Counted from the stretch's first letter, positions 2,858-32,000 are shown. The stretch: DNA of 32,000 nt from Paramicrosporidium saccamoebae KSL3 (GCA_002794465.1 MTSL01000146.1:1-32000); one strand, 5' to 3'. Notes: generated by a model not told the origin, from the letters alone. Numbers and translations: made by a program.

Positions 2858-4303
2858 TTAGCAAAAATTAATGTTATAGGCTACGGCGAGTGCCTCTACC
2901 AAACTCTTTTCGTCGTGCAATTTTCTCAAGTAAGGGTCGTCGCCACCACACACAATTTGAGTTACTTGTGAGGCTGGTAGTTCGACTGGGGAGTTGTAAT
3001 GCAATGTGAGCACGGTCACGATTATCACTATATCTCTGAATCGAGGTCCGCTCGACATGTACATCCCATTCTCCTCCAGCAACTTGAATAGCCAGGTTTG
3101 CAGCAGTTCTTCCGCAGGAAGGCCGTTGATATAATATGGGCAGAAGGTTAGATTTTGTGCGAGGACTCTTAGGATGTGCTTCTGATCGCTCTGCCCATCA
3201 AGTGTTAACAACTTGTTGTTTGTTCTCTGAAAAGTCTTTCTGAACAGGGAAATGTTCTGTGCGGGCGTGAGCAGGGCGGGGAGACCGATAAATAAAGTGA
3301 GCCGATTGTTGAGCAACCGATCATGGTCTACCAGGATCTTGTAACGGTCCAGGTAGGTCGGATACTGCGAAAGTGTCTGCATGATTGACAAATAGTCGTA
3401 CTGTGGCAGTTTAATCCGACTCAGCCGGGTAATCACTCTCCTAAAGGCATTGTCCTCGCGAAAAGGAGGAGCAAGCAAGAGTACCAGATGTCGTGTCTCA
3501 ATGTCGTTCCGGAAAAGCGAAAAGTCTTCCAGAGCGGCACAGCGGCCGGTATTGTCAAGAATGCAGTTCAGCACAGCGAATAGCAAATCGCCTACGGATG
3601 CGACAAATGTGTGCATCTCTACGAAAAATTCAACGTAAGCAAGCTCAAGGTCATCGTTTTCAAACTGTCCATATCGATCATAGACGATACGAAGAATCGC
3701 TGCTCTTGCTGGCTCGTCATGGATCTTGATGTATCTAAGAAGAACCTTTAGTAGCTGCGGCTCTAAATCTCCAGCCCACTCCAGTGCAAGTGGCGTCAGA
3801 TAGCGGTGCAACGGAGTGTCGTGAGCATCCAAGATGAATTTTTCCCAGTTCATATCCTCCCACCACGGATAGTTGAAGCGATACTCTCCCCGAGTGTCCA
3901 TATAGTCAATACGTTGCATACTTTTCAGAAACCAAGTGGGATCCCTCACGGTTACCGGGAGATGGTGCCATTTCAGAGTTTGCGGGACCGAGAACTGCAG
4001 TTTGGCGGTGCACCAGGGCGATAAGAGCCATCTGGATTCGGGATTTGCATCCACATAAGTGCTCACATCGTCATATAGCTCAGGAGTCCAGTGTTTGCAG
4101 CTGCGGGCCAAGGCATCGTGTATCGAAAAATATTCCATAGTTTGGGTGAGAGTAGCATAGTCGGAAGATTTCAGGAGGACATGGGCCACGGTAGACTTTA
4201 GCCTTTCTGTTAGCGTTCTGGCCATGTCATCTCGTGACAGATACAGCACGATGCCAGGTGCATTCTGGAAAAACAGCAGCAGGAACACCAAAGTCCTTAA
4301 CAT
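2858..4303 (-). CDS. Orphan ~481-aa protein with signal-peptide-like N-terminus
   Basis: Long intronless ORF. The track start at 4330 is TTG; the first ATG (4303) gives MLRTLVFLLLFFQNAPG. No family recognised. Confidence 0.78.
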   Translation of the reverse strand: MLRTLVFLLLFFQNAPGIVLYLSRDDMARTLTERLKSTVAHVLLKSSDYATLTQTMEYFSIHDALARSCKHWTPELYDDVSTYVDANPESRWLLSPWCTAKLQFSVPQTLKWHHLPVTVRDPTWFLKSMQRIDYMDTRGEYRFNYPWWEDMNWEKFILDAHDTPLHRYLTPLALEWAGDLEPQLLKVLLRYIKIHDEPARAAILRIVYDRYGQFENDDLELAYVEFFVEMHTFVASVGDLLFAVLNCILDNTGRCAALEDFSLFRNDIETRHLVLLLAPPFREDNAFRRVITRLSRIKLPQYDYLSIMQTLSQYPTYLDRYKILVDHDRLLNNRLTLFIGLPALLTPAQNISLFRKTFQRTNNKLLTLDGQSDQKHILRVLAQNLTFCPYYINGLPAEELLQTWLFKLLEENGMYMSSGPRFRDIVIIVTVLTLHYNSPVELPASQVTQIVCGGDDPYLRKLHDEKSLVEALAVAYNINFC

Positions 4304-4597
4304 AACAGGGGTTAAAGGGACACTGGCCAAGGTTATTAACCACTGTTTATAGAATAAATTTTATTGACTATAATGCGAAAAGGATTTATTCGGGCATTTC
4401 TTTTGATATACATACCTGGATTGCGGTTGTTGCTGTGATCCAACTATGCCTACTGGTCCGCCCCAGGTTGTGGCTGAGGCTGTGTGGTAAACTTTCTCCA
4501 AGCTAACCGGGGTTGAGCCGTCCATCTCCGGTCAAGACGCCGTCTGTACCCGAGGCAGGTTCATGATAAATTGGCACCCTGATGGTTAAAGATTATT

Positions 4598-4830
4598 GCG
4601 TAGTGGGGATAATACCACAGACGGGGAGGGGGGTTGTTCACTGCTAATCCTAGAATAGTATGGATGCACATGCCGCGTAGTGGGGATGATACCACGACCC
4701 AAGTCATACGGACATCTGTTCATTGCTAATCCTAGAATAGTATGGATACACATCTCACTGTCCTCGAACACCCAGCAAAACGATCCGCTCTAGCACACAA
4801 ATACCCAACTAATCAATCCTCTATGTCACA
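4598..4830 (+). repeat. Dispersed repeat family, locus A: two tandem ~77-82-bp units plus a downstream shared block
   Basis: GCGTAGTGGGGAT(A/G)ATACCAC at 4598 and 4675; GCTAATCCTAGAATAGTATGGAT at 4643 and 4725; 4808-4830 matches 12964-12986 at 20/23. Confidence 0.88.
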
Positions 4831-4856
4831 TAATAACGATGGGGATCTATTAATAT

Positions 4857-6887
4857 CTATCTACGCTGTTTTTGCTTTTGGCTATGCTTGCGTTGTGTAA
4901 GCTGTTTCTCTCTCAGGGATCTGCGCTTCTTGGCACGCACTGTGCCCTTGTGCGCCAACATGATGGCATTCTTGGTAGTCTTTTCCTTGACACGGTTCGT
5001 GGAGCTGGCCTTTTCATGATGTTTTCCCTTCTTTGAGCCATACTTGAGACGGCCCTCACGCCCCGTCTTAATAGAGGCCATGCGCGCCTCATAGTCGGCC
5101 TTGGTCTTTTTACGCGATTCAAGGCTGCGTGGATCCACAACGTCTGGATCTTGAGTTTCCGAATCTGAATCCGAGCTAGATTCTGATTCAGAGGCGTCCA
5201 TCTCACCAGCAACACGTTTGCGTAGTCTACTAATCTCTGCTGGACTGAAAATTTTTTGTGAAGCCAAAGTGACAATGTCTACAGATGGTGAACAGTGTTC
5301 CGTGTCCGAATCCGAATCCAAGTTAGAATCCGAGTTAGAATCGAGATCAGAGCCGGGGTCAGAGTTAGAGTCAGCGTGGGCTTGAGGAGAGGATTGGTCA
5401 TGAATACCACTGGCATCAAGATGGGTGATAGTGTTGGAGCCAAATGTAATGGGCTTGGCGACACGGCCCTCTTTCATGGCAATGGTCACTTCCTTGCCAC
5501 GATCGCGACGATGGAGCATTTCGGGATTAAACTCTCGATAGAGTGCAATCAGAGAACGTGCAGCCATGACTACGCCTTTGTTATTGTAACCCTTGAATTG
5601 GGCGAGATCCTGCAACAGGTCACTTTCCATAGCCGCGGGACAACGGGTGCAAATTTCACGCAGACCGTTGAGACCAGCGGCAATCACCTCATTGGCGCAG
5701 TGTTCAGCGGCAAAGTTGTGGGTAATTGCAGTGAGTAGCGGCATCATGACATCGGATGGAAGCATATCGTGGGTAGCCTGGGCGGCGTAGGCCAAGATCT
5801 GAGTAACCTCCTTTTGATGGGGCTGAATGTAGCGATGAAGGAAGGAGTAAAAGTCAAGTAGTAAAAGTCGATGCGCTCCAATCACACGCGAGATTACATT
5901 CATCATCAACAGCTTCAGATCAAAGGGTTCGTTACTACGCTTTAGCTGCGCAAATAGCTTTTCAACAAAACCCTGTGGATCGTGCAAAAGATGGATAGCG
6001 GCAAAGGAGCCGTGTCGGTCGTTGTTTTGATTCTTTCGCTCCTTTCGATGCATTCCATTTAGTGCTTTTTTCAGCTTTTTTGCTGTGGTGCGCTTGTTTG
6101 CTCCACTAAAGCTACTCTTTTGCAGTAGCTCCTTGTATTCATTGCCTTCCTCTTCCTCATCTTCACTATCGTCGGCCAGCGCCTTTCCACGGAAACGACC
6201 CACAAAGAAATTCAGCGCCGTATTCATCACTTTGGGACTGACCTTTCGCACAGCTGCATCAGCCACAACGTTTACGGTGCGGACATCGTCCCAAATGCGC
6301 TTTCGGTAGAGTTCAATGATAATCTGCAAAATGCGGTCTAATGCCAAATTCTCATCAGTGCCCAACTGCGTCCCGGAATGTTCTTCAAATAGGCCATACA
6401 TGTAGTTCTGCAGGGACCGGTTCAGGCCATTGTTTTTGTGGGGTCGGTTGGCCCGACGCACTTCGCCCACAATAGACGTGTATAGCATCTCTCGCAGTGT
6501 CTTGTCCTGTACCCGCAACAGTCGGAAAAATAGCTCCAGCAACGGCTGCAGCTCCAGCAGTCCGTGCTTCCGGAGTAGCAACAGGCCTTGCACCAATACT
6601 CGTCGTAGCGACGCATTCATTCCCGCTGCTTCTCGCTCAAGCAGTCCCGTTATCAAGCCTGGAAACTCTTGTCGACTCTCTGGATAACAGCCAGCGACAT
6701 GACTGAGAAAGGTCACTAGTGCCTCAAAATGGTCATCTGCCGCTGAGGGACGAACCTCGACAATCGCCAGGGAAGCCTTGAAGTGCAAATACTGTTGGGC
6801 AAACTCTTGTGCGTAGGATGCTGCATCCCGTTTGATGAGGTTCTGCAGATGGGGATAGTTACTGGGCTGAATGGCAGCTCGTCCCAT
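4857..6887 (-). CDS. SDA1: Sda1, 60S ribosomal subunit biogenesis/export factor (~676 aa)
   Basis: Start moved to ATG 6887 (MGRAAIQPSNYPHLQNLIKRDAASY matches the Sda1 N-terminus); FSAIHLLHDPQGF-like motif, GLNGLREIC, YEARMASIKTGREGR, STNRVK and basic tail. Confidence 0.94.
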   Translation of the reverse strand: MGRAAIQPSNYPHLQNLIKRDAASYAQEFAQQYLHFKASLAIVEVRPSAADDHFEALVTFLSHVAGCYPESRQEFPGLITGLLEREAAGMNASLRRVLVQGLLLLRKHGLLELQPLLELFFRLLRVQDKTLREMLYTSIVGEVRRANRPHKNNGLNRSLQNYMYGLFEEHSGTQLGTDENLALDRILQIIIELYRKRIWDDVRTVNVVADAAVRKVSPKVMNTALNFFVGRFRGKALADDSEDEEEEGNEYKELLQKSSFSGANKRTTAKKLKKALNGMHRKERKNQNNDRHGSFAAIHLLHDPQGFVEKLFAQLKRSNEPFDLKLLMMNVISRVIGAHRLLLLDFYSFLHRYIQPHQKEVTQILAYAAQATHDMLPSDVMMPLLTAITHNFAAEHCANEVIAAGLNGLREICTRCPAAMESDLLQDLAQFKGYNNKGVVMAARSLIALYREFNPEMLHRRDRGKEVTIAMKEGRVAKPITFGSNTITHLDASGIHDQSSPQAHADSNSDPGSDLDSNSDSNLDSDSDTEHCSPSVDIVTLASQKIFSPAEISRLRKRVAGEMDASESESSSDSDSETQDPDVVDPRSLESRKKTKADYEARMASIKTGREGRLKYGSKKGKHHEKASSTNRVKEKTTKNAIMLAHKGTVRAKKRRSLREKQLTQRKHSQKQKQRR

Positions 6888-6907
6888 TCCTGCGACCGGG
6901 GTCAACG

Positions 6908-7723
6908 ATGCGGACTGCATTGATATTGTGGATACTATGGTTAGGCGTGCATTCGCGACAAGACGCACAGTCCACAGAAATGGTGTATGTGGAGAGCATT
7001 GGATTTGTGTGGGTTTCCCGGTCCGCCGAGCACCGGAACCGACGAAGAGTGCGACAACGAAGGAGAATTGCCCCTGGCGACAATATCGTCTTGTCTTCCC
7101 AGCACGGTGACACGGAACATGCCTACAATGCTCCCCAACGCGCAAGAGACGAGCTATGTGGTCATCCAGACTTTCCAAACATGTCGAAGCGTCGATATGA
7201 CTATATTCAAACTCTCCTGGCTGGAATTCCGACTAGGAGCACTCAGTCAGTGATCAGCGCAGTCATTTCGCAGTTAAAACCAAAACTCCGACAGTTGCAT
7301 CGCGGCTATGTCTTTCTATCTCGTCGTGGAATTGGACTGGCAGAAGATGTGTGCACGGGGGACGACCACAGGGAACGCATAGAGGTGTGGTGGTCTGAGG
7401 ATGAGGAGTACAATACCAGCCGTTTGCCGAAACGGCCGTCCTCCTCGAATGGCGGACCGATCCGACCACGGACCTTTAAATATCGCTATCCGTTACGAGA
7501 CTATCGCAACAGCTTCTTCAAGGGGCTGAAGTATCATTTGTTTGGTCTTGTCGATCCGGTAGAAAAGATGATGACCCTGGTGATGGATATGACACCTGAG
7601 CGGGCGGAATCTTTACAATTACCCAAGGAAGGCCGAAGAATTGACACGGGAGAGTGGCAGAGATACGTGGAACGATACACTGTCAACGATAGATTTGAGG
7701 CCAATCCCGTTTATGAAAAATAA
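6908..7723 (+). CDS. Orphan 271-aa protein with signal-peptide-like N-terminus
   Basis: ATG-initiated intronless ORF filling the SDA1-PRP4 gap; MRTALILWILWLGVHS; no family recognised. Confidence 0.62.
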   Translation: MRTALILWILWLGVHSRQDAQSTEMVYVESIGFVWVSRSAEHRNRRRVRQRRRIAPGDNIVLSSQHGDTEHAYNAPQRARDELCGHPDFPNMSKRRYDYIQTLLAGIPTRSTQSVISAVISQLKPKLRQLHRGYVFLSRRGIGLAEDVCTGDDHRERIEVWWSEDEEYNTSRLPKRPSSSNGGPIRPRTFKYRYPLRDYRNSFFKGLKYHLFGLVDPVEKMMTLVMDMTPERAESLQLPKEGRRIDTGEWQRYVERYTVNDRFEANPVYEK

Positions 7724-7744
7724 CTGTATAATAAAAGTGCTATA

Positions 7745-7912
7745 CGATGAAGGATAATGAGGTCTTTACCATTTAGGACTATTATGTTATTTGTGAGACT
7801 ATAAGAGGGTCGTTGGATTGACTGAATAAATTCTCGCCTCTTCTCTTCTCTTCTCGTCCCATCTCGTCGTCTCTTCCCGCCTGACAACGTCCGTGGTATT
7901 ATCCCCACTACG
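7745..7912 (-). repeat. Dispersed repeat family, locus B (inverted copy with GAGAA microsatellite expansion)
   Basis: Reverse complement aligns with 12803-12913: CGTAGTGGGGATAATACCACGG ... AGAATTTATTCAGTCAATCCAACGACCCT(C/T)TTATAGTCTC ... AAATGGTAAAGA(C/T)CT(C/T)ATTATCCTTCATCG. Confidence 0.92.
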
Positions 7913-7935
7913 TGAAAAGTACATCAATATACACA

Positions 7936-9384
7936 TCAAGTAGCCATCGAATTTGCATTCTGACACTTCCATAGCTTTATCGTACGATCTGCACTTGCAG
8001 TTAATACACTGGGCCCCGCGCCTCTTGACATTTCTGCATCCAATACCTTGGATTCGTTTCCACTGAGAGTGACAAGCGGCTTTAGATCTGTACTCCAAAG
8101 TCGGGCTGTACCATCGAAACCCGCGGTAAGCAGCACTTCATTGCGCCATTTGGCACAACTTACCACGGAAGACTGAGCTGGAAGCACATGAGTAGGAAGT
8201 AGTTTACGCAAATCCCAGATGCGCACAGTGCCATCTTCACTTCCGGTAGCGATTGTGGGAAGGAGAGGATGAAAATCAAGTGACAGGATTGCCTTGATGT
8301 GGCCTTGCAGTGTCCAAATGGCCCGACCCAATCTGAGATCCCAAATCCGGCCATGGGAATCGAGTGCACCCGTTGCCGCCAATGCCCCATCAGGATGGAA
8401 TGCCATCGAGTACACGTGACGAGAATGTCCCTCTTGCAATTGCAGTTCACATTGTCGTTCCACGTCCCAAAGACGCCAACTGTGGTCAAAACTCGCCGAG
8501 CCTAGCAAACGTCCCGAGGGATGAAAAGCCACCTGTGACACCCTTCCTGTATGTCCTCTCAGCTCACCCGTCGCCTTTTCTTGCTGCAAAGACCAAAGCG
8601 CAATCTTTCCCTCGTTGTCGCAGCTGGCCAGTGTGTTGTCTACTGGACTAAAGACGACACTCCCAATTCGTGACGAATGCACACCCTCCAATTCGCAAAT
8701 CAGAGTGCAGTCCTCAGCCGACCAAATACGACAGACGCCCCCAAAATCACCCGTCGCAAACACTCCGCCGTCGGGAGAGAAAGAACAGGATGAAATTGGC
8801 CGCTCTCCCCCCACCTGACTCGCTACCAATTCAAAACCTCGCATTTTTGCATACAGCTCGGATCGCTGCCGTTGCACTTTTTCTGGTGGCTGCGCTCGGT
8901 ACTCTTTCTCTTGATTTAACCGTTCTTGTGAGCGTTTTAGGCTGTACTCTACTAGCCAACGTCTCGTCTCTTCCAACTCTCTTGAACCCGGCACAAAAAA
9001 CTCTTCCGAATCATCCACCTGTTCCTCCTGTTTCGTCTCCAGACCCGCTACATCCAACAGCTTTTGGTATTGTTCACGCTTTCCTGATGATAATAATGTC
9101 CGAAGTCGTTCACGACGGTCATAAGGGCCCTCGGCAAAAACTGTGATGGGTTCTTTAATGCCGCGTAGCCAACTCTTTACGATACGGTCGTCTGTGGGGA
9201 TGGCAAGCTGTTTTCCGCGTTGCTTTGCTTGTCGCTCGGAGAGATAGAGAGACTGTAATGCGGTGGGTTCGACCAGCTGAGGAGAGTGAGAGGCCTTTAT
9301 TTCCTCCAGCGCGACTCCTTCAATGTCATTGGTGTCTTCATGGGATACGTCGTTCAAGCTGCCAAAATGTATTCGGTTTGACAT
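7936..9384 (-). CDS. PRP4: U4/U6 snRNP WD40 protein Prp4 (~482 aa; alternative ATG at 9432)
   Basis: IHFGSL N-terminus, PRP4/SFM domain (IPTDDRIVKSWLRGIKEPITVFAEGPYDRRERLR), SQVGGERPIS, seven WD repeats (LQEGHSRHVY). Confidence 0.95.
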   Translation of the reverse strand: MSNRIHFGSLNDVSHEDTNDIEGVALEEIKASHSPQLVEPTALQSLYLSERQAKQRGKQLAIPTDDRIVKSWLRGIKEPITVFAEGPYDRRERLRTLLSSGKREQYQKLLDVAGLETKQEEQVDDSEEFFVPGSRELEETRRWLVEYSLKRSQERLNQEKEYRAQPPEKVQRQRSELYAKMRGFELVASQVGGERPISSCSFSPDGGVFATGDFGGVCRIWSAEDCTLICELEGVHSSRIGSVVFSPVDNTLASCDNEGKIALWSLQQEKATGELRGHTGRVSQVAFHPSGRLLGSASFDHSWRLWDVERQCELQLQEGHSRHVYSMAFHPDGALAATGALDSHGRIWDLRLGRAIWTLQGHIKAILSLDFHPLLPTIATGSEDGTVRIWDLRKLLPTHVLPAQSSVVSCAKWRNEVLLTAGFDGTARLWSTDLKPLVTLSGNESKVLDAEMSRGAGPSVLTASADRTIKLWKCQNANSMAT

Positions 9385-9453
9385 GAGACAGTGCTGGCCA
9401 CGCCGCCCAGGGTTGACAAGTTTTAATACCATCCCCGCAAGAATATTGTCAAA

Positions 9454-11004
9454 ATGAGGCTCGTGTGGCTCCGTCTCATCATCACATGTTCGGCAATATG
9501 CATCAAATTATCCCAAAACATCATCGAGACTAAGCTCGATGGCGCACTCTTACACGTCGTCTATTGGTCATCGCTACAATATAAAGACAATTATCCAGCC
9601 ATGGGCCAAATGCTGAGTTCTTTTGGCTTGGGACAGACAAAGATTTTGACTGATACTTGCTCCAAGTGGACACGCAATATTTACCAAATGGTCCGCGAGT
9701 TTGTGGTTGCAAATCCAAAATACGAACAGTACTTTTTGACACCGGAATGTGCCCAGTTGTTAAAAGTTCTGACTATTCAGGACACTGTGGACAATTTGAG
9801 GGATGGACTTTACGCGTCAGCGCCTCCAGATTGCAATATGGAAAATGAGTTTGCATTGAAGCTGGCGTTACTCAATATTGACTGCATAGATCGGTTTGGT
9901 CTCTTCCGATCCCGACTAGTCACAAGAATCCTTGACTGGTCATTTCTGCCGACAGATGACATGCTATCCAACGTTCCAGTGTCTGGATATCTAAGCCATC
10001 ACATGGTCGAAAATTTTGGAAACGAGTTGACGTTTGTCAAATTTCTATGCGGAAATCTGGAGCGCCATCAAAACAATGTCGAAAACTATCTGGTCATCCT
10101 AGAGATTACGATAGAGCGACTGGCGGCTCTGCGACACCACACAGAGCTAGAAATTCAGGAAGCCCGACTTTTTTATGACGCAATATTAAAGTACTCTCCA
10201 AATATTCCTTACGAGGTGTTGATCAAGACAACAAAGATTACGGCCTATATAAGAAGGACGGCCCCGAATATGACGCTTTCGGGAGTGTTCACGAGCACCG
10301 ATCCTATTCACCTTGTTAAACTTGGGATATTGGTTCATGGTATCCAGCGTGTCGTTCCCCCGAGTTCCCTAGTCTCTGCCACACGCAAGCACCTGAAAGC
10401 GGCGAGTGATTTTGAATTTGTCGAACTATTGCGTCTCATTACCGAATATGGCACGGCAGGCAGTTGTCGGCTGTACACTAACAATCTATACAAACGGCTA
10501 CATGACATCCGACCCCAACTGACCAAAGTAAAACCCACAGTAATGGGCTGTTTTACTGCCGAAGAACGGATCGCCTATTTTCGGAGATGGGAGAGTATCC
10601 TCCCGTGGAAGCGACATTGGATCATTGGAAGTGCCGGCTTTGATCTCACCTGGGCGCACTATTTATTCAGAGTGCCCATTTACCGCAATTCCTTGGGGCA
10701 CGTGAAAAGGCTATTCCATCAGTGTTTGGAGCATTTGCGAAAATATGTTATAGTGTTCTCCACCAATTATGGACTGGTTGAGCGGCATTGGTTGAGCTTG
10801 AACGATCCGCCAGAAGACATGTGCAATGACGTTATAAGACTCTTTACCCTGTTGTTGCTGTCCAAACTACACTATGACGGAATTGGATACGAGCTGGAGT
10901 ATCGATTAGCCTATGAGGTGGCGTGTCAACCAAAGAGTCAATTTACTAGAAACTTGGATATCCTGAGTAGTGGGATAATGGTTGTGTACAATTTGATTTG
11001 TTAG
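9454..11004 (+). CDS. Orphan 516-aa protein, possible signal peptide
   Basis: Long intronless ORF rich in L/Y/F; MRLVWLRLIITCSAIC; alternative ATG at 9601; no family recognised. Confidence 0.8.
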   Translation: MRLVWLRLIITCSAICIKLSQNIIETKLDGALLHVVYWSSLQYKDNYPAMGQMLSSFGLGQTKILTDTCSKWTRNIYQMVREFVVANPKYEQYFLTPECAQLLKVLTIQDTVDNLRDGLYASAPPDCNMENEFALKLALLNIDCIDRFGLFRSRLVTRILDWSFLPTDDMLSNVPVSGYLSHHMVENFGNELTFVKFLCGNLERHQNNVENYLVILEITIERLAALRHHTELEIQEARLFYDAILKYSPNIPYEVLIKTTKITAYIRRTAPNMTLSGVFTSTDPIHLVKLGILVHGIQRVVPPSSLVSATRKHLKAASDFEFVELLRLITEYGTAGSCRLYTNNLYKRLHDIRPQLTKVKPTVMGCFTAEERIAYFRRWESILPWKRHWIIGSAGFDLTWAHYLFRVPIYRNSLGHVKRLFHQCLEHLRKYVIVFSTNYGLVERHWLSLNDPPEDMCNDVIRLFTLLLLSKLHYDGIGYELEYRLAYEVACQPKSQFTRNLDILSSGIMVVYNLIC

Positions 11005-11106
11005 AGTGTATCAGATGAGTTTTAGAGCCATCCCAGACTGAAATTATGCTGGGGGGGGAGCATTGAATTGTTGACCACAAAAACTCTTGGCTTCTTGACA
11101 ATTAGT

Positions 11107-12510
11107 TTATTCCCAATACTTTATCGTTCCGTCCCAACTACAAGACGCCATTCTACTTGCATGCTGGGGATTCCATTCCACACCAATACAGACTTGCGGA
11201 TGTGCATCTAGTCTTCTTACCTGTTGGCCGTTCTGCCAGTTCCACACCATCACCTGGCCCCGTCCATCGCCAGAGCAAATGTAACGTCCATCGGGCGAAA
11301 AGTTGACCTGGCACGCATATCCCGAGGTGGAATGTCCAATGAACCGTTTGTTACGCGGAGTCAAGAGATCGTGCAGCGAATAAATCTGAATCTGATTAGC
11401 TAATGATTGGAATGCAAGAAACGGTTCAGTAGGATGATGCGCAACATATGGCATGCTTTGCATTTCTGGATCGCTGATTGTCTTGACTGAATTTCCGTTT
11501 CCGTATTCCCAGACGCGAAGTGTGCGGTCATCGCTCGATGTTACAAAGTTGCGTCCCTCGTTGAAGAAGGTAATTGTGTTGATTGCGCCGTTGTGTTGAC
11601 TGTATTCCAGGACGAGTTCGTCGGCGCGGATGTCCCACTGCAGCACCTTTTTATCAGCAGTTCCCACGAGCATGATATTGGGGTCGTCGGGATGGGTCCG
11701 GACACAGTATGGGATGGTGCTGTATTCTTTGCCAAAAATGCATTTTCCCGTCTCAGTGTCCCATTGTTTGTAGGATCGGTCATAGGAGCAACTGACAAAT
11801 TTGCCTCCATCTGAGCTAAAGTTGACCTCACGCACCGGCTTGTTGTGTCCATAGAATGTCCGGATACACTCTCGTTCGCCATATACATTCCACAGCTTGA
11901 TCCGCTGGTCCTGTGCGGCAGACAAGAGTAAATGTCCCGTCTTTGGGATGAATCGAATAGAATTTACCCCCTTTGTGTGGCCTGTCCAAGTGTGGATGAG
12001 CCGTTTGGGAGCGAAACAGTCAAATGTCTCCTTGTCAAAGGACATGCCCTCCTCATGTGGAGGCGACATGTACGACCGACCCAAATAGTCTCTCTCCTCT
12101 TTGCCGTGAAAAACGGAGCGTTCCTGTCCTAATGCAACATGCCCACTAAGAGTGGCTGGCACAAAGCGCGATTTTTCTGTCAAAAACTTGTTCATCTCTT
12201 CCTCACTTGGCTGCGTCACGGCCTCCTCGCCCTTATTTTCTCCCACAAAGCCAGCCCACGGACCACGGAAGCCTTCAACATTGGCAGGGTCGCCGCGTTC
12301 AAGACGATGTTTCTTGGGCCGTTTGGCCTCGGCGTGCTTCTGACGTTCATGAAGACGACGCTGTTTTTCAAAATCGGCATTACTTAGCTCGACCGGTTCG
12401 ACCTTTCCTGCCAGAGTTACAGTCGTCTTGCTCTTTGGCTGCGTAGTACTAGAAATCTACAATAATAAGACCAAAACATACTAAAATACCAATTGGTCAT
12501 CATCACCCAT
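11107..12510 (-). CDS. CDC40: Pre-mRNA splicing factor Prp17/Cdc40 (~456 aa); exons 12510-12490 and 12456-11107
   Basis: GFRGPWAGF, GQERSVFHG, APKRLIHTWTGHTKGV, WD40s ending SCSWDGTIKYWE. A 33-nt GT-AG intron (12489-12457) links MGDDDQL to the long frame; the track start is GTG. Confidence 0.93.
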
Positions 12511-12541
12511 ACCGATCCCCGGCCTTATGAGATTGAGTGTT

Positions 12542-12633
12542 GAGTTTCGAGTTTTGAGCGGTGAGGTTGAGAGTTAAGCGTCGAGTTCCGAGTTTTGAGC
12601 GATGAGGGTGGTGAAAGTTGAGTGTCGAGTTGA
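12542..12633 (+). repeat. ~41-44-bp degenerate tandem repeat (2+ copies) immediately upstream of CDC40
   Basis: gagtt(t/c)cgagttttgagcg(g/a)tgagg at 12542 and 12583; partial third gagttga at 12627. Confidence 0.75.
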
Positions 12634-12802
12634 ATATAGAGGCTCCTTATGGGGGTGTATTAGACGTATATAAATCCTTTCAGATTTGTGCCGTTTATAA
12701 ATAATTACTCTCAACACATTGAATATTCTGATCAGGATCGCCAATAGGCACAAAGGCAGAGATTGTCGTATTGTAATGTATAGGATTCGCAACCTTGTGT
12801 CG

Positions 12803-12986
12803 CGTAGTGGGATAATACCACGGCCCAGTTTAGGCGAGAAGAGAATTTATTCAGTCAATCCAACGACCCTTTTATAGTCTCCCAAATGGTAAAGATCTTA
12901 TTATCCTTCATCGATTGTTCTGATTATCCTTCTCCAAACTAGGGAACTATTTCCAAAAGACATACTAATCAGTCTTCTACGTCACA
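12803..12986 (+). repeat. Dispersed repeat family, locus C
   Basis: 12803-12913 is collinear with inverted locus B; 12964-12986 matches locus A 4808-4830. Confidence 0.9.
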
Positions 12987-13108: not shown

Positions 13109-13729
13109 ATGCTGCTTTTTGCTGCACTTTTCCTCTTCTCTGTTGTTGTGGGCGAGGAGCAGATTACCAACCCATACCTCATCAACCCGTTGGAATTGCA
13201 TGGAACGACACAATATCTCGTGTTTCATGGCAATTTGCGCTCAAACTATACATATGCAAGGACACGCTGCGTTGCCCTCGGCGGCGATCTCGTTGATGTG
13301 GACACTTTGGAGAATCTGCAATATTTGACGGCAAGGATCCACGGACCTGCGTTCATTTCTGGTTTTCTGGGAGACCATTTTGGGGACGAGTGCGCCGCTA
13401 TTTATCCAGGAGGAGCGGTGGCAATTCCGGAGCACGAGTGCAGATCCCGACTCGACAGTATCTGTGAGGTACCAGTGTTGGGAACCGGTGCGATCCATCT
13501 TGGCGCAGTAAGAGACTATTTGGGCGACAAGGACCACGAGTTGGCCGTACTGCCCGGCACCAAAGCTGATTTTCATGTGGTTCCCAAGGGCTTCTTCCGG
13601 CTGGCGGCTGACGGCGGTAATTTTGTAGTCGCTGCCAAACAGAATGGCGTAGTTACCACGACGATTAACATTTACGGCTCAATTGCTACGAACCCTGTGC
13701 TACCGTGTTGCAAGTGCTGCGGTCTATAA
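13109..13729 (+). CDS. Secreted C-type lectin-like domain protein (~206 aa) with Cys-rich C-terminus
   Basis: Signal peptide MLLFAALFLFSVVVG from ATG 13109; CTLD pattern ARTRCVALGGDLVDVDTLENLQYL...FISG...CAAI...C...SICE; tail PCCKCCGL. Confidence 0.75.
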   Translation: MLLFAALFLFSVVVGEEQITNPYLINPLELHGTTQYLVFHGNLRSNYTYARTRCVALGGDLVDVDTLENLQYLTARIHGPAFISGFLGDHFGDECAAIYPGGAVAIPEHECRSRLDSICEVPVLGTGAIHLGAVRDYLGDKDHELAVLPGTKADFHVVPKGFFRLAADGGNFVVAAKQNGVVTTTINIYGSIATNPVLPCCKCCGL

Positions 13730-15081: not shown

Positions 15082-15540
15082 CTATAGGCCGTGCTCCAAA
15101 TCCATCTCCATCCAGTCATGGAACCGATCGCCGAGGCTTTGTTTGCCCTCTGGAACCACCGCTCTTCCGTTTCCTGATATATTCTTGGTTGTGGCAGGGA
15201 CCTTTACGTCCTCTTGTAAAGTTGGTGTCCCGGGACTCTCCTTGGTGAGGCTAGGAACAGTGGCACTCGGCGCGGGTGATGGCGTTGCCGAGCTGCGGGG
15301 CGGATACCGCGCCAGTGCAATTTCAAACTTGACAGTATCCATTAAAGTACTTTCTCAAAGAGCGTTTTGTGACGTTGGTGTCTCTCTAGTGCCTATCTGA
15401 GGTGAATCTGAAACAGTTCTGACGAATGAGATATCTTTCAACCTTGGCTTCCGCGCTCCCGATTGGTCACTACGCTGGTCCGGCAACTTTATGGGATTGG
15501 CCGCTTGAGCAGTAGTAAGTGCCAAATTTGAGTAGAACAT
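15082..15540 (-). CDS. Hypothetical low-complexity protein; two in-frame ORFs separated by a single TGA
   Basis: ORF 15540-15355 and ORF 15342-15082 share a frame (QNAL*ESTLMDTV); Pro/Ser/Thr-rich; no homology recognised. Confidence 0.3.
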
Positions 15541-15669
15541 TATTGTGTGACCATATAGGCGCTGGATTTAGGTGGAGCATTATTGTGAGACCATATAGGT
15601 ACTGGATTTGAGTGTAATATTATTGTGAGACCACATAGGTGCTGAATTTGAGCGGGACATTGTGAGACC
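15520..15669 (+). repeat. 40-bp minisatellite, ~3.5 copies
   Basis: TATTGTG(T/A)GACCA(T/C)ATAGG at 15541, 15581 and 15621 (exact 40-bp period); partial units at 15520 and 15659. Confidence 0.92.
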
Positions 15670-17963: not shown

Positions 17964-18000
17964 CCTCGACTTTAACACGTAAATATTTTCGTTTCATTTA

Positions 18001-18344
18001 TTATTTTGGCAGCGCCTTGTCAATGTAGTCCTGCACAGTCTTGACACACTTGATCTGGGATTTGTTTGCAGTATGTGATACATATGGTTTTAGGGTAAAG
18101 TTGGTGAGATCGGGGATCATGAATTGTCTAATCTTTTTTGGGTCGAGAATGTAATGTGCTCCCTGGTAATGCCCGAGAGAGCCAGTTCCAGAACCTGAAA
18201 GTGTCAAACGTATGAGGCAACTCAGATACCCTTATAGTACTGCTTATTTCCATGCTTGGCAGGCATTCGACCCCTCCGCATCCAACGAACAAAAATGTGC
18301 TGTGATTTTAACTGTAGACCGTCCAGCGACTGCAGCAGCTTCAT
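18001..18344 (-). CDS. MRPL27: Mitochondrial ribosomal protein mL41 (~102 aa); intron 18229-18195
   Basis: KHGNKQYYKG|SGTGSLGH...YILDPKKIRQFMIPDL...LKPYVS; the 35-nt GT-AG intron joins the two track ORFs. Confidence 0.88.
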
Positions 18345-18519
18345 AAGATTTCCGAAATGTATTAATGTTAAATTGGCGCGTATCAGGCATAGGTGTTGAC
18401 GCGCGAGAGTATGAGGTGGAGTTGAATTTATCAGTCTCTCAACCATCGTGGGCAAGTTATTGTTGGGCTATAGTATCAATTATCTATCTATTCTAAAGTA
18501 TCTACCCAATGGCCAGTGT

Positions 18520-18879
18520 TTATAGAGACTCGGTTACTATTACATCGCCACTTTGGATTGCCTCATTGATATCGCGGGCACCCATGCTTTTCAATTCAGC
18601 TACGCGACGCCGATCGTTATGGCGCCTTGTCATAAAGTGCTCTGCCTACAAAATCTAGTACAACAGCACAGTTACCCATGAACTTGGACAGGCTTCTTTT
18701 AGCATTGATTTTAGTTCAGCACAAGCTGACACATCTTCCCCAGCTTCCCCGCCTTCTCCAGCTTTCCCATTCTGAACTGTATCATCAAGACACGCGAATA
18801 GTTTGTCGCGCACTGCCCAACATTTCTGTCGACTGGCTTTGTCCAAAGGACGATAATTCAAGTTGTCCGGGTCGGACAT
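18520..18879 (-). CDS. COA6: Cytochrome c oxidase assembly factor Coa6/Cox6b-like twin-Cys protein (~109 aa); intron 18675-18646
   Basis: RQKCWAVRDKLFAC (CX9C) and CAELKSMLKEACPSSW|AEHFMTRR (CX10C, W..F..RR) after removing the 30-nt intron. Confidence 0.85.
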
Positions 18880-18993
18880 TCCAACAAACCACGCCAGCCA
18901 ATCAAATCATCAGCCAGGGTTTCCGAGGAATTTACCAGCTTTCTTAGTCCCGGGGGCCAGTGAGGTCAATTAGCGCTAAATCTCCATCTCATA

Positions 18994-20084: not shown

Positions 20085-21983
20085 ATGACTGAACAAGTTG
20101 CAGAGTCTGCGCCCGTTATGGAGAGTGCCCCTAAAAAGTCAAGAACCGACGGATATGTACACTACGATGATATTAAGAGAGAAAATGCAGTGTTGGAAGA
20201 TTATTATCGACGCCAAGAAATTATTCCGGACGAGGAATGGCCCCAGTTTCTGGCCGTTTTGGGACAAAATTTGCCCATTACGTTTCGTCTGACTGGTCAT
20301 CGTGACGAAGCTGCATCCATCAACCGTCAGCTCCACGACGTCCTCCTCCCAACTCTTGGGACTGCAGCTCGCTCTTTGCCTTGGTATCCAGAGGGATATG
20401 CCTTTCACTTGGATACGGATCGCAAGTCGATGCGCACGCAGGAAGGCTACTCGGCCTTTCATAAATGGCTAGTTGCAGCCACTGAAAATGGAGACATTAG
20501 TAGACAAGAGGCAGTCAGTATGGTGCCTCCGTTGTTGATGGATATCAAGGCGGAGCATTTGGTATTGGACATGTGTGCTGCCCCAGGATCAAAGACGGCA
20601 CAGCTCGTAGAGTATATGCATGCAGACGCACAAAAGATGGACGTTGAGGCTACCGGATTGGTCATTGCCAATGATTCTGATCAACAGCGCGCATATTTAT
20701 TATACCATCAGGTAAAGAGAATTCTGTCGCCAGGCCTGCTGGTCGCCAACAATGACGGTACCTCATTCCCCACACTGGTTGCAGCGGCCAATGGGAACTT
20801 TGAGCGCGTCTATTTTGATCGTATCCTGGCTGATGTCCCATGTAGTGGCGATGGAACCCTAAGAAAGAATGCCAACTTGTGGAAAACTTGGACACCCCAT
20901 CTGGCACTTGGTCTGCATCCCCTGCAGATTCGACTTTTGGATAAGGCAGTGAGATTGCTAAAAGTTGGTGGTAGACTTGTGTATTCTACGTGCAGCATGA
21001 ATCCCGTCGAGAATGAGGCAGTACTTGCGTACATTCTGCATCAATACTCCCATGCTCTCCATCTGGTCGATGTTTCTTCTGATTTGGCTGGCTTGGAACG
21101 TCGTCCTGGCAAGTCCGGATGGAAGGTTCTTACCAAGGACGGAGCAGAGTATGAAAAGGCTGAGGATGTGCCTCAGGATCAACGAAAACGCTTCCCACCA
21201 TCTCTATTCCCAAAGCCGGAATATTCTCAGCTGAATCTGGACCGCTGTCTTCGCATCTATCCCCATTTGCAAAATACTGGCGCCTTTTTTGTTGCAGTCA
21301 TTGCCAAAACTGCCGATATTGATACTGTCGCAGCTGAGCCCTCAGCAAATAGCGCACCGCGTCCAGTGAAGAAGGGAAAGCGCAAGTTTGGTGTTCCCAA
21401 GACTGAAAGCGAGTTCCGTATTTTGGATCCCTCTAATGATCCGGTTCTCGACAACATTTTCGATTGGTTCGGTATTGATAAGGAGCGTCTCATCCAAAAT
21501 GGCTATGGATTCCTTGTCCGCTCGGAACGCGACCCCATCAAAGTCGTCAGTCTCGTCTCGCCATGTGCCATGCCAATTTTCAAGGCCACCGTGTCCTCCC
21601 ATCGTGTTGAGGGAGAGCAGGAATTGTACAATGGATCCCTAAAGATTGTGAATGCGGGAGTGCGCGCTTTTGAAGTATACGAAAGTAACAGACCGGTTCC
21701 AGTAGACTGTCCATACCGATTGCTATCCGAATCAGTGGCCATCCTTCGCCCATACATGAACAAGCGCGTCGTCAAAGTCGAAAAAGAAGTCATTTTGCAA
21801 TTGATTGACTGCCAAGATTCTGTAAAGATTGAGATTGAAGGGCTCGACCAAGGAGGTGCTGTTCTCGAGGCAACCAACACTGAAGGAAATATGGTATGCA
21901 TTCCCGTCTGGATCAGCGAACGAGGCATAAAAGCATTTGTACCGAATCCCAATCGACCTGCACTGCGTCTCCAATTGGCATGA
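20085..21983 (+). CDS. NCL1: tRNA cytosine-5 methyltransferase Ncl1/Trm4 (NSUN2)
   Basis: ISRQEAVSMVPP, VLDMCAAPGSKT, FDRILADVPCSGDGT, LVYSTCSMNPVENEAV, RIYPHLQNTGAFFVA. Confidence 0.96.
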   Translation: MTEQVAESAPVMESAPKKSRTDGYVHYDDIKRENAVLEDYYRRQEIIPDEEWPQFLAVLGQNLPITFRLTGHRDEAASINRQLHDVLLPTLGTAARSLPWYPEGYAFHLDTDRKSMRTQEGYSAFHKWLVAATENGDISRQEAVSMVPPLLMDIKAEHLVLDMCAAPGSKTAQLVEYMHADAQKMDVEATGLVIANDSDQQRAYLLYHQVKRILSPGLLVANNDGTSFPTLVAAANGNFERVYFDRILADVPCSGDGTLRKNANLWKTWTPHLALGLHPLQIRLLDKAVRLLKVGGRLVYSTCSMNPVENEAVLAYILHQYSHALHLVDVSSDLAGLERRPGKSGWKVLTKDGAEYEKAEDVPQDQRKRFPPSLFPKPEYSQLNLDRCLRIYPHLQNTGAFFVAVIAKTADIDTVAAEPSANSAPRPVKKGKRKFGVPKTESEFRILDPSNDPVLDNIFDWFGIDKERLIQNGYGFLVRSERDPIKVVSLVSPCAMPIFKATVSSHRVEGEQELYNGSLKIVNAGVRAFEVYESNRPVPVDCPYRLLSESVAILRPYMNKRVVKVEKEVILQLIDCQDSVKIEIEGLDQGGAVLEATNTEGNMVCIPVWISERGIKAFVPNPNRPALRLQLA

Positions 21984-22050
21984 AGGTATGAAGGTATGAG
22001 GGTATGAGGGTATGAGGATATGAGGTCAGGAGGTCAGGAGGTCATGAGGG
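21981..22050 (+). repeat. 8-bp tandem repeat (TGA[A/G]GGTA drifting to GGAGGTCA) starting at the NCL1 stop codon
   Basis: tgaaggta tgaaggta tgagggta tgaggggta tgaggata tgaggtca ggaggtca ggaggtca tgagggtg. Confidence 0.85.
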
Positions 22051-22205
22051 TGTATTGGTGCGGTATAACGGCGTGGCATGTCGATAATATCTCAATGGTA
22101 TATTGACAAAATCTCAGTGATATATTGATAATATCCCAATGACTGATAATGTCTTAACAAAGAGTATAGAAAATACATTGAATTTACTTTGGGTTGCTAA
22201 AGTGA

Positions 22206-27097: not shown

Positions 27098-27911
27098 ATG
27101 GCAAACTACATAGACGTTGGTCAGCCCAACTCGACCTTATATATACAGAACCTGAATGAAAGAGTTACTCCAAAAAGTCTGTGTAGTCAGTTGAAAAAGA
27201 CATTTGGAGTGTTTGGAGAGATTCTTGACGTTGTCGCGAAACGACGTGTGGCCTTGCGGGGACAGGCTTTTGTTCTGTTCCGAGACATGGAGGCGGCTCG
27301 CCAGGCCATAGAGACCCTTCAGGGAGATAGATTATATGGAAAATCAATGGTGATCAAATATGCAAAATACAAGTCAGACGTCATCAGCAAAGCTGATGGC
27401 ACATATGAGATTGAGAGGCGTCGACGCGAGCAGGACAGGAGTAAGCCGTTGGGGATGATTCGCTTACTTTTTAGTTGAACGGTCGCGTCATCCCCGCATG
27501 ACCCGGAGACAAATGCTAGCGCAAATGGCCGCTAACCCGGGAATGCAAGGAATGTCAAGTTTGCCCATGGCCGGCTTGCCAATGCACATGGGACCTGGAA
27601 TGGGCGGATTTGGGATGAGTGGGCCTGGAAGTGGTCCCTCCCTCGGGCCTCAAATGGTGGGAGGAGAGCTGCAGCTTCCAAACAAGGTCTTGTACTTGCA
27701 GAATCTGCCGGAAGGAACTACTGAGAAACAACTTGTGGAAGTGTTTAAAAAATATCCAGGATTTGTAGAGATGCGCCTTGTGCCGAATCGTCCAGATGTA
27801 GCCTTTGCTGAATACGAGAGTGAGGCACAGGCGGTTGTTGCTCGCCAGGCTGCCGAAACACACGAAATTCAACCCGGAGTCAATCTGCGGGTGGCATTTG
27901 CACGTCGCTGA
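27098..27911 (+). CDS. U1A/U2B'' family snRNP protein with two RRMs (~259 aa); intron 27441-27474
   Basis: TLYIQNLNE...RGQAFV...YAKYKSD (RRM1) and PNKVLYLQNLP...DVAFAEY (RRM2); U1A versus U2B'' cannot be resolved by eye. Confidence 0.92.
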
Positions 27912-27939: not shown

Positions 27940-28016
27940 ATGTGAGCTGTGAGATTTGACTTTTGACGTTTGGAATTTGATACTCGACATTTGATATTCG
28001 ATATTTGAGCTTTGAA
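27940..28016 (+). repeat. Degenerate TTTGA/TTCGA ~7-8-bp repeat between convergent genes
   Basis: atttgac ttttgac gtttgga atttgat actcgac atttgat attcgat atttgag ctttgaa. Confidence 0.7.
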
Positions 28017-28581: not shown

Positions 28582-29579
28582 TTAATTGTGGTTTGTACCA
28601 GATTCTGCTAGAATAAACTGTACAGTTGCAGCCAAATCAAATTTGGGCGACCATTCCCAGTCTTTTCTGGCATTACTGTCATCAAGTATGTGAGGCCAGC
28701 TATCAGCAATAGCCTGTCTATGATCAGGCTTATAGTTAACAGACATGGTCTTTCCCGTTGCCGTTTCAATTGCGGCCCGTAGTGTTCCAGGATTGAAAGA
28801 CATTGCTTGAATGTTGTAGACGGACCTAGTCAGTCTTTCACGAGGCACCGACATTAGCTTGATTATGCCTTCAATACAGTCGTCAATATGAACCATGGGG
28901 AGCGTAGTGTCGGCACGCAGGAAACAATTATACTCGCCGGAGATGGCGGCACGAACCATCTCGATGGCATAATCTATCGACTATTAGTATTGCAAGACTG
29001 AAAAACCTGTGGTTCCAGTCCCAGCAGACGCATTGGCAGAGAGAACTCCAGGGAGTCGGATCGATCTAAAGTCGACTCCATATCGGCGATGAAAGTAGTC
29101 ACCCAAGAGCTCGTTGTATACCTTGGTCGTTCCGTACAGGAACTGAGGTGCCATGATGGTTGTATCAGAGGCCGTCTTAGGCGTATCAGGTCCGAATGCA
29201 GCAATTGTGGACGGGCAGAATAGACGGAAACGGTACTTTTGCGCCAGCTGCAGCATGTGGACAAAGCTGTCGACATTGACCTTTAGGGTTCTGACAGCAG
29301 CAGACCAGTCCTTCTCCGCTGCCCCAGATAGGATTGCAGGCAGATGAAAAACCCACTCGGGCTTATAGTCTTCAATAATCTTTTTCGCATTTTTCATAAT
29401 GGTAATGTCACTTTGTTCAAACGTGCCAATGTGTTCCGGACCGGTGGCAGAAATGTCCACTCCAACCACAGTGGCGCCTTTGAAGGCTTTGCTCAAGGCT
29501 GTCCCAATTTGACCGTTGCATCCTACAACGTCATCGTATGTGAAGGTGTGCCTGTGATCAGAACTCGAGATGGCGTCAT
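28582..29579 (-). CDS. TDH: L-threonine 3-dehydrogenase, extended-SDR type (~311 aa); introns 29551-29523 (GC-AG) and 29006-28974
   Basis: After splicing: MTPSRVLITGCNGQIG, FHLPAILS, PSTIAAFG, YGTTK, YGVDFRSIRLPG, GTGTT|DYA, DSWP...DDSNARKDWEW. Confidence 0.92.
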
Positions 29580-29629: not shown

Positions 29630-30923
29630 ATGTTGGGAATCTTTCGACCATCATTGCAGCTATTGTCCCGTAGCCAATTTTACAAGAGGCTAGTGCAAGA
29701 TTTGGATGCCATGAAAGCATCTGGGCTGTACAAAGACGAGCAAGTCATTGCCTCTCCCCAATCCAACAGTGTAAAGGTGCAAGGGGAAAATTTGATTAAT
29801 TTCTGTGCCAACAACTATCTCGGTCTTTCAAACCATCCTGGTAATATTGAAAACGCCATGTAATTCCCGTAGAGCTTGTTGAGGCTGGAAAGCATGCCTT
29901 GGAGTCTCGTGGGGCGGGGATGAGCTCGGTGAGATTTATTTGTGGTACGCAAGACCTTCACAAGAAGCTGGAGGCAAAAATTTCCGAATTCCATGGAACC
30001 GATGACACAATTCTCTACACGAGTTGTTTTGATGCAAATGCAGGTATTTTCGAAACATTGCTGGGAGCAGAAGATGCAGTCATTTCTGATGCCCTAAATC
30101 ACGCATCCATAATTGATGGAATACGACTTTGTAAAGCGCAAAGATTGCGTTACAAGCACAATGATATGGATGACCTCGAGAGATTATTGAAGGATAATCG
30201 AGAAAAGGCCCGGACCATGCTTATCGCAACTGATGGCGTATTTAGCATGGATGGCGACTTGGCCAAGCTGCCCGAAATCTGTCATTTAGCTCGAAAATAC
30301 GATGCGCTTGTGTTTGTAGATGACAGTCACGCCACTGGGTTCATTGGTTCTACGGGTCGCGGAACGGCAGAGCATTTTAATCTCGAAAAGGAGGTGGACA
30401 TTATCTCTTCCACTCTTGGAAAGGCGCTTGGAGGCTCGTCCGGTAAGTCACTTTGGGAGCGTTGGTTCATCTTCTAGGCGGGTATACCACAGGACGATCT
30501 GAGGTCATATCTACTCTTCGACAGCGCAGCCGGCCATATTTATTCTCCAACAGCCTTCCTCCGGTGATTGCCTCGTTTGCGCTGAAAGCACTGGAGCTCG
30601 TATCTTCTCGGCCGGAACTTTGTATTGCTGTAAATGAAAATGCGGTGCATTTCCGAAAAAGCATGACAGCCAAAGGATTCAAGATTATGGGAAACGCCAG
30701 TCATCCCATTTGTCCAGTACTGATTGGCGACGCCGTGATTGCCGGCAAGATGGCCGCAGAACTGCGAGCTTGTGGCATATTTGTGATTGCATTTAGCTAC
30801 CCCGTGGTGCCTCACGACCTTGCTCGAATCCGCGTCCAATTATCGGCTTCTCACACCAAAAAGCAAATTGACAATGCTGTTGCAGAATTCGAGCGTATAG
30901 GCAAGAAATATAATGTTATCTAA
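29630..30923 (+). CDS. KBL: 2-amino-3-ketobutyrate CoA ligase (glycine C-acetyltransferase, ~408 aa); introns 29841-29872 and 30443-30477
   Basis: [15 protein letters not shown]|[39 protein letters not shown] (PLP Lys) S|[22 protein letters not shown]...ARIRVQ. Confidence 0.96.
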
Positions 30924-30932
30924 AGTGAATAA

Positions 30933-30985
30933 TGTGATTGTGCGATTAGGCGATTATGCGGTGAGGCGATTGGGGGGCTGTGGGC
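30933..30985 (+). repeat. Degenerate GCGATT repeat downstream of KBL
   Basis: gtgattgtgcgattaggcgattatgcggtgaggcgattgggggg. Confidence 0.55.
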
Positions 30986-31206: not shown

Positions 31207-32000
31207 CTACTGGCTTACAATGCTGTCATGTGTTCCAAAGAGTTTGTGGACTGAATCATATATCCAGGTGGGGAACAGTCGTGCGATTGAAATAATCATC
31301 ATGAATCGGGGTAGCCAAACCTCTATGCGTCCGGTCTCAATAGCATCTACAATCTGTTGGGCCACAAAAGATACTGTGAGGGTGGGTAGTAGACTTTTAA
31401 AATTCCACTTTACCTTGCCGCGGAACATGGCAGTATCTACATGAAATGGGCATATAATTGTTGTTGTCACACCCGAGCATCCATCTGCCTGCAGCTCTAA
31501 TCTTAGGGATTCATTCATCCCATACAATGCAAATTTGCTGGCACAGTAGTCGGCTACAAGTAAATGTGCAAAAAGTACCTAGTACTCATTTTTGCCACTC
31601 CCCCAATACCCAAGATGGACGAAATGTTGACAATGCGTCCAAAATTCTTCTCAATCATTTGGGGAAGGAATTTTTTGATGAGTCGGAATGGTCCCATTAC
31701 ATTCACATTCAAGACATTTTGAATTTCCTGATCTGACAGTTCGCCTATTCGTTTCCCCCTGTTCCAAATTCCCGCATTATTGACAAGGATTGTCGGGGCT
31801 ACGTTCTAGATATTGAAAAGTGTATCACAACACGTACCTTTGACACGAGAGCGGCTGCCAAGTTGTCGATACTTTCTGCATCACCAACATTGCACTCGAT
31901 GTATTGTACATCTATGGCTGGAATCTATATAAACAATGTGCATACTTTTTGGCAGTTCCCAGTCTGGCCGAGCTATGTCAGCGATTATTATTTTAGAGCA
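31207..32000 (-). CDS. Classical short-chain dehydrogenase (RDH10/DHRS-like), 5'-truncated by the window edge; introns 31945-31912, 31837-31806 and 31585-31554
   Basis: IIIADI, YIECNVGD, ILVNNAGI, NVNVMG, IVNISSILG, T|DYCASKFA (YxxxK), ESLRLEL, ICPFHVDTAMF; possible further intron near the stop. Confidence 0.9.

Follow-up and report, generated by a model that had tools for sequence, protein, structure and literature searches.

Short repeats in three intergenic spacers of Paramicrosporidium saccamoebae: possible young relics of a miniature inverted-repeat transposable element

A 20-nt core sequence (CGTAGTGGGGATAATACCAC) occurs four times, at three loci (A, B and C), in the first 32 kb of the 44,627-bp contig MTSL01000146.1 of Paramicrosporidium saccamoebae (GCA_002794465.1), the stretch of DNA analysed here and called the window below. 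We tentatively read these repeats as young copies, or remnants, of a low-copy and non-coding DNA element similar to a miniature inverted-repeat transposable element (MITE), specific to the P. saccamoebae lineage and spread locally. The host species is a member of the Rozellomycota that parasitises amoebae, and its genome is a reference for the fungal-to-microsporidian transition. Judged from the ends of open reading frames (ORFs) and of Pfam domains, each of the three loci is intergenic; the copies lie in both orientations, always in spacers. The original prediction of four core copies at three intergenic loci is borne out, with none expected by chance (100 shuffles); the fourth copy lacks one G, and the repeats are indeed devoid of coding capacity. 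The relevant features are as follows.

4598-4674, plus strand: locus A, unit 1, made of the core, a G-rich spacer and a 37-nt block (4635-4671)
4599-4618, plus strand: core A1, exact
4675-4756, plus strand: locus A, unit 2, made of the core, an unrelated spacer and the 37-nt block (4717-4753)
4676-4695, plus strand: core A2, 1 mismatch
4808-4830, plus strand: 23-nt block at A (ACTAATCAATCCTCTATGTCACA), 20/23 against the C copy, 27 nt from the opposite-strand SDA1 stop codon
7745-7912, minus strand: locus B unit, 168 nt, with the core as 5' arm (7893-7912), a GA-rich expanded spacer (approximately 7833-7892) and a 3' arm (7745-7759)
7893-7912, minus strand: core B, exact
12803-12913, plus strand: locus C unit, 111 nt, with 5' arm CGTAGTGGGATAATA (12803-12817) and 3' arm TATTATCCTTCATCG (12899-12913)
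12803-12821, plus strand: core C, one G missing
12964-12986, plus strand: 23-nt block at C (ACTAATCAGTCTTCTACGTCACA), 20/23 against the A copy, beyond the unit shared by B and C

The evidence that carries this reading comes from B and C. When the B unit (7912-7745, minus strand) is aligned with the C unit (12803-12913), 100 of 114 positions are identical and 59 columns are gaps, accounted for by a GA-rich expansion, an 18-nt indel and a single G; the alignment over some 110-170 bp with indels noticed earlier is reproduced. The homology begins exactly at CGTAG and ends exactly at CATCG, and the sequences on either side (ACTTTTCA and TATAGCAC around the B unit, TTGTGTCG and ATTGTTCT around the C unit) are unrelated. 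These limits are also where imperfect inverted repeats are found: at C, when CGTAGTGGGATAATA is set in register against the reverse complement of TATTATCCTTCATCG, 11 of the 15 positions agree, including an exact run of 8 nt; just 0.019% of the window's 111-nt segments score as well (empirical p ~2e-4), and an exact inverted pair (GGATAATA/TATTATCC) was reported by a repeat search. Terminal inverted repeats (TIRs) thus sit at the precise ends of the B/C unit, and since the limits of homology coincide with them, the core corresponds to one arm of a TIR. The original prediction, which had seen neither a TIR with target-site duplications (TSDs) nor a poly-A tail, therefore needs revision for the TIR and stands for the other two, there being no poly-A tail at any of these copies.

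Locus A is organised differently. It is a tandem pair of units (77 and 82 nt) in which the core (20/21) and the 37-nt block (35/37) are conserved and the spacer between them has diverged beyond alignment; such head-to-tail copies are found there only, B and C being single dispersed units. The core is the sole part that A shares with the B and C units, the interiors being different. A and C also have in common, as originally predicted, the separate 23-nt block (20/23, with 0 expected by chance), which follows core A2 at a distance of 132 nt and core C at 161 nt; beyond core and block, the similarity of A to B/C is not significant (p ~0.2). The possibility that the 23-nt block is an inverted copy of the core was considered and dropped (p = 0.08-0.29), and a sensitive self-comparison of the window revealed no other non-coding similarity. 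Since A consists of two tandem copies of the arm joined to an unrelated interior, we regard it as a rearranged derivative. Conservation of a terminal arm in all four copies, with an interior that differs between A and B/C, is reminiscent of what is seen in MITE subfamilies.

If the repeats are relics of such an element, it would be 111 nt long at C and 168 nt at B, where a GA microsatellite has expanded. Its ends would be inverted termini of 15 nt that match imperfectly, with CGTAGTGGGATAATA on the 5' side and TATTATCCTTCATCG on the 3' side, and the core would be the 5' arm. A transposase supplied in trans would have recognised these termini and moved the unit over a short distance, by local hopping across ~5 kb into inverted orientation, and slippage might afterwards have produced the tandem pair at A as well as the GA-rich and 18-nt indels. 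A more specific proposal for the core, which we consider improbable, is that a DNA transposon system active in recent times uses it as its terminal recognition sequence, or else that a lineage-specific factor binds it in spacers and duplication has spread it. MITEs with TIRs of 5-34 bp are present even in very small microsporidian genomes (PMC4405373, PMC7313128), and the repeats described here resemble those of Nosema, Encephalitozoon and Enterocytozoon (PMC4405373, PMC7313128) in size (111-168 nt), in being non-coding and intergenic, in their inverted termini of ~15 nt, in having conserved ends and a variable interior, in occurring in both orientations, and in being young and lineage-specific.

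Uncultured relatives of Paramicrosporidium are present in environmental metagenomes, namely L007 (JGI 3300042203), L006 (ENA ERZ1079237) and L010-L012 (JGI 3300036987, 3300037657, 3300037044). With PRP4 proteins 89% and 56% identical and gene order kept, these contigs would be useful for comparative annotation in general. In the closest relative, L007, whose PRP4 is 89-90% identical, fourfold-degenerate sites are only 54% identical, which implies that neutral DNA is nearly saturated between the two, whereas the copies are 88-95% identical to one another. Copying has therefore been recent and specific to this lineage, and the cores can be this similar without any purifying selection. In agreement with a lineage-specific origin, the 101 nt of PRP4 3' flank available on the L007 contig contain neither the core nor the GA-rich spacer. 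The same flank may nevertheless have kept a segment similar to the inner part of the unit (AATTTATT...TTTTATAG; p = 0.004 against C, 0.037 against B), which on the opposite strand carries an AATAAA following the convergent gene. In L010, a more distant relative represented by a 78-kb contig on which the order is M28 peptidase, WD40, orphans, PRP4, SDA1 and DEAD helicase, the syntenic 21-kb region lacks the core, and no other repeat family is dispersed among its spacers. Scans of public collections with the core returned three metagenome, two bacterial-genome and no viral matches, all of them limited to the core with dissimilar flanks and hence chance matches.

Several observations weigh against a mobile element, and some of them are also where the loci depart from the microsporidian MITEs: (i) no direct repeat of 2-10 bp abuts the ends of the unit at B or C, so TSDs are lacking; (ii) the inverted repeat is imperfect (11/15) and is less striking when the register is left free (p = 0.01 at C, 0.09 at B); (iii) locus A has only copies of a single arm, and these are direct, not inverted; (iv) the 23-nt block common to A and C falls outside the B/C unit; (v) L007 does not offer a cleanly empty site, as it seems to have kept a segment similar to the inner part of the unit (p = 0.004-0.04); (vi) unfiltered profile searches of contig positions 1-35,154 (35,154 bases of the 7.3-Mb assembly, which is also the extent of all our copy searches) found these four copies and none in the remaining ~27 kb, so that three loci are known in 35 kb; and (vii) the genome paper reports a repeat content of 0.53%, mostly simple repeats, for this 7.3-Mb genome and nowhere uses the word 'transpos*'. 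Neither a superfamily nor an autonomous partner is assigned here, which is a further difference from the microsporidian families. The expectation that many more copies would be found genome-wide consequently lacks support, both from the ~27 kb and from the published 0.53%. The idea of a mobile element, put forward originally as one of three, gains from the coincidence of the B/C limits with 15-nt imperfect inverted termini and loses from the missing TSDs and poly-A tail.

Part of this evidence speaks for non-transpositional local duplication, by which patches of 20-170 nt would have been copied between neighbouring spacers through replication slippage, template switching or ectopic repair synthesis, the process being neutral and the inverted termini fortuitous. 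Every copy falls inside a stretch of 8.4 kb, with none in the other ~27 kb examined; the pattern is a mosaic, C sharing core and inner unit with B but the 23-nt block with A; TSDs are absent; the indels between copies look like products of slippage; intergenic tandem duplications are frequent in the window, and the published repeat content is very low. This explanation, which we judge rather unlikely, leaves unaccounted for why the homology between B and C ends exactly at the inverted termini, and why the same arm of 20-25 nt, and little else, is common to A, B and C. A comparison with minisatellites and local micro-duplications cuts both ways: A is a two-unit tandem array, B and C differ by GA-rich and 18-nt indels, and other spacers contain arrays with 8-41-nt periods, but B and C, separated by 5 kb, are inverted relative to each other and end sharply at inverted termini, and the core recurs in otherwise unrelated sequence. 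As a separate observation, short tandem arrays unrelated to the core (periods of 8-41 nt) are found at 12528-12631, 15526-15661, 21977-22142, 27975-28008 and 30936-30971; slippage or duplication seems to affect spacer DNA readily in this genome.

Another way to account for a sharply conserved core is a propagated cis-regulatory module, in which the core, and perhaps the 23-nt block, would be a putative site for a DNA-binding protein (promoter element, insulator or roadblock terminator) and selection would hold the core intact while neighbouring sequence drifts. The core is indeed 95-100% conserved in four copies beside unalignable spacers, GGATAATA...TATTATCC make up a palindromic pair, the nearest core at A and at C is ~300 nt upstream of a gene for an orphan protein bearing a signal peptide, and A lies between tandem and B between convergent genes, where insulation would help. 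These contexts are not equivalent, however, because at A and C the core precedes a gene start but at B it is between two gene 3' ends, and it is missing both downstream of PRP4 in L007 and from the L010 syntenic region. Hence neither orthologous conservation nor a consistent position relative to genes, as would be expected for a conserved cis-element, is observed. Moreover, the similar youth of all copies makes constraint unnecessary to explain their identity, and no known motif was matched by any test. In compact fungal genomes such as that of yeast, the sites of general regulatory factors and insulators are short conserved motifs in a minority of spacers. Such sites resemble the core in being short, sharply conserved and confined to few spacers, at promoters and between gene ends; they differ in that here more than 100 nt of flank was duplicated along with the motif, orthologous conservation is absent and neither a factor nor a matching consensus emerged. 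Taken together, a regulatory module is unlikely.

The remaining proposal, a structured RNA family, did not hold up. No tRNA was detected by ARAGORN, and Rfam 15 gave no match at the gathering threshold, none at E <= 10 over 8.9 kb and none over locus A alone (530 nt). Folding of each copy on both strands was no better than that of shuffled sequences (z from -0.64 to +0.74). Across the four copies, the consensus structure comes down to one invariant hairpin of 4 bp with no compensatory change and no covariation; the GTGG...CCAC inverted repeat that had been pointed out in the core does exist, but this short hairpin is all it forms. Since there is no Rfam match, z is close to 0 and covariation is lacking, a structured RNA family is not supported. 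More broadly, the copies might be small RNA genes (snoRNA-like, snRNA-like or transcribed by RNA polymerase III (Pol III)) or short introns in untranslated regions (UTRs). In favour of this, three of the four copies contain GCGTAGTGG, which by inspection is similar to the consensus of a Pol III A box, GTAT..G and YAG motifs are found on the flanks of the cores, and the B copy and the PRP4 3' UTR share a strand. Besides the negative Rfam (E <= 10), tRNA and folding results on both strands, the absence of covariation beyond a 4-bp hairpin, of a B box and of a consistent T-run terminator makes it highly improbable, as does the fact that the five introns inferred locally are 32-50 nt long and inside coding genes, whereas these loci are intergenic.

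A number of more specific candidates were tried and rejected. A tRNA-derived short interspersed element (SINE) or a Pol III gene would have only an A-box-like GCnnAGTGG to its credit, with no B box, poly-A tail or consistent T-run. Readings based on resemblance to tRNA/SINE and 5S-derived sequences, to the primer-binding site of long terminal repeat (LTR) elements and to Mig1-, Reb1- and Abf1-like sites found support in none of the tests run. In spacer A, ATACATACCTG (4408-4418) looks like the start of U1 snRNA, with 0.03 such matches expected by chance, and is probably not part of a U1 gene, there being no Rfam U1 match, a fold z of -0.74 and a poor Sm-like site. An intron or introner was likewise discarded, as the ORFs on either side of A and B carry SDA1_C and WD40 right up to their ends and the introns inferred locally measure 32-50 nt. 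Introner-like elements and short spliceosomal introns do share splice-site-like motifs with the repeats, and the public annotation places long introns across A and B; they are unlike them in that the loci are intergenic and the modelled introns are 6-18 times longer than those of 32-50 nt.

The three loci are set among genes as follows. Spacer A (4331-4856) separates the stop of SDA1, whose C-terminal domain (SDA1_C) extends to the end of the ORF, from the start of an orphan gene of ~490 aa, the two being in tandem. Spacer B (7724-7935) lies between two convergent genes, one of which is PRP4, with a WD40 domain extending to the end of an ORF that matches its relatives all the way; core B starts ~24 nt past the PRP4 stop, on the same strand, and an AATAAA at 7825-7830 (plus strand), within the B unit, is ~100 nt past the stop of the convergent gene. 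Locus C is found between divergent genes, ~300 nt upstream of an ATG at 13109, and the protein encoded downstream begins with a hydrophobic stretch that resembles a signal peptide.

The public models in this region (2858-6920, 6980-8004, 8082-9384) appear wrong: SDA1 is fused to the downstream orphan across locus A through an intron of ~577 nt, a 293-nt intron (7682-7974) spans locus B, and PRP4 is shortened by a 58-nt intron (8106-8163) although an uninterrupted ORF (7936-9432) matches relatives to its end. Five introns were deduced in the window from frame joins against conserved protein motifs, all of them in coding genes and 32-50 nt long, with 5' sites GTAAGT, GTAATA, GTAAGC, GTTTTT and GTACTA and 3' sites YAG. 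Their coordinates, computed for 30443-30492 and approximate for the other four, are as follows.

29843-29874: inferred intron
30443-30492: inferred intron
27443-27476: inferred intron
28957-28989, minus strand: inferred intron
31531-31562, minus strand: inferred intron

Because local introns are so short, and because the models also cut conserved domains, the 293-nt and ~577-nt introns are doubtful, and the long introns annotated across A and B look like artefacts. Since the repeats coincide with faulty gene models, recognising them aids re-annotation. Should the core prove to be a transposon terminus, no mobile-element family would have been described before it in Paramicrosporidium, whose genome was published as virtually repeat-free. 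A young MITE-like family would show that mobility at the DNA level, or active copying of spacer DNA, persists in a reduced genome, and would supply a marker for strain comparison. In any case, the repeats are a real but fairly ordinary feature, which opens no new kind of biology.

Some other genes of the window deserve mention. Two orphan proteins of ~500 aa with hydrophobic N-termini, encoded at 2858-4330 (minus strand) and 9454-11004 (plus strand), are weak paralogues (28% over 78 aa), and five genes without a Pfam match (460-597 aa) occupy corresponding positions in L010 (4040-9507 and 11640-15468); together, they are possibly an expanded lineage-specific family. In a protein look-up, a lineage-specific orphan of 516 aa matched itself alone. 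At 31207-31800 (minus strand), where the public annotation calls no gene, ORFs joined by an inferred 32-nt intron encode a short-chain dehydrogenase (SDR), the closest protein to which (64% identical) is on the ENA metagenome contig L006, with the order dehydrogenase, aminotransferase, epimerase kept. Finally, a 74-aa ORF at 18655-18879 (minus strand), in a 1-kb unannotated stretch (17964-18993), matches Pfam COX6B (E = 5e-11) and is probably a missed small gene.

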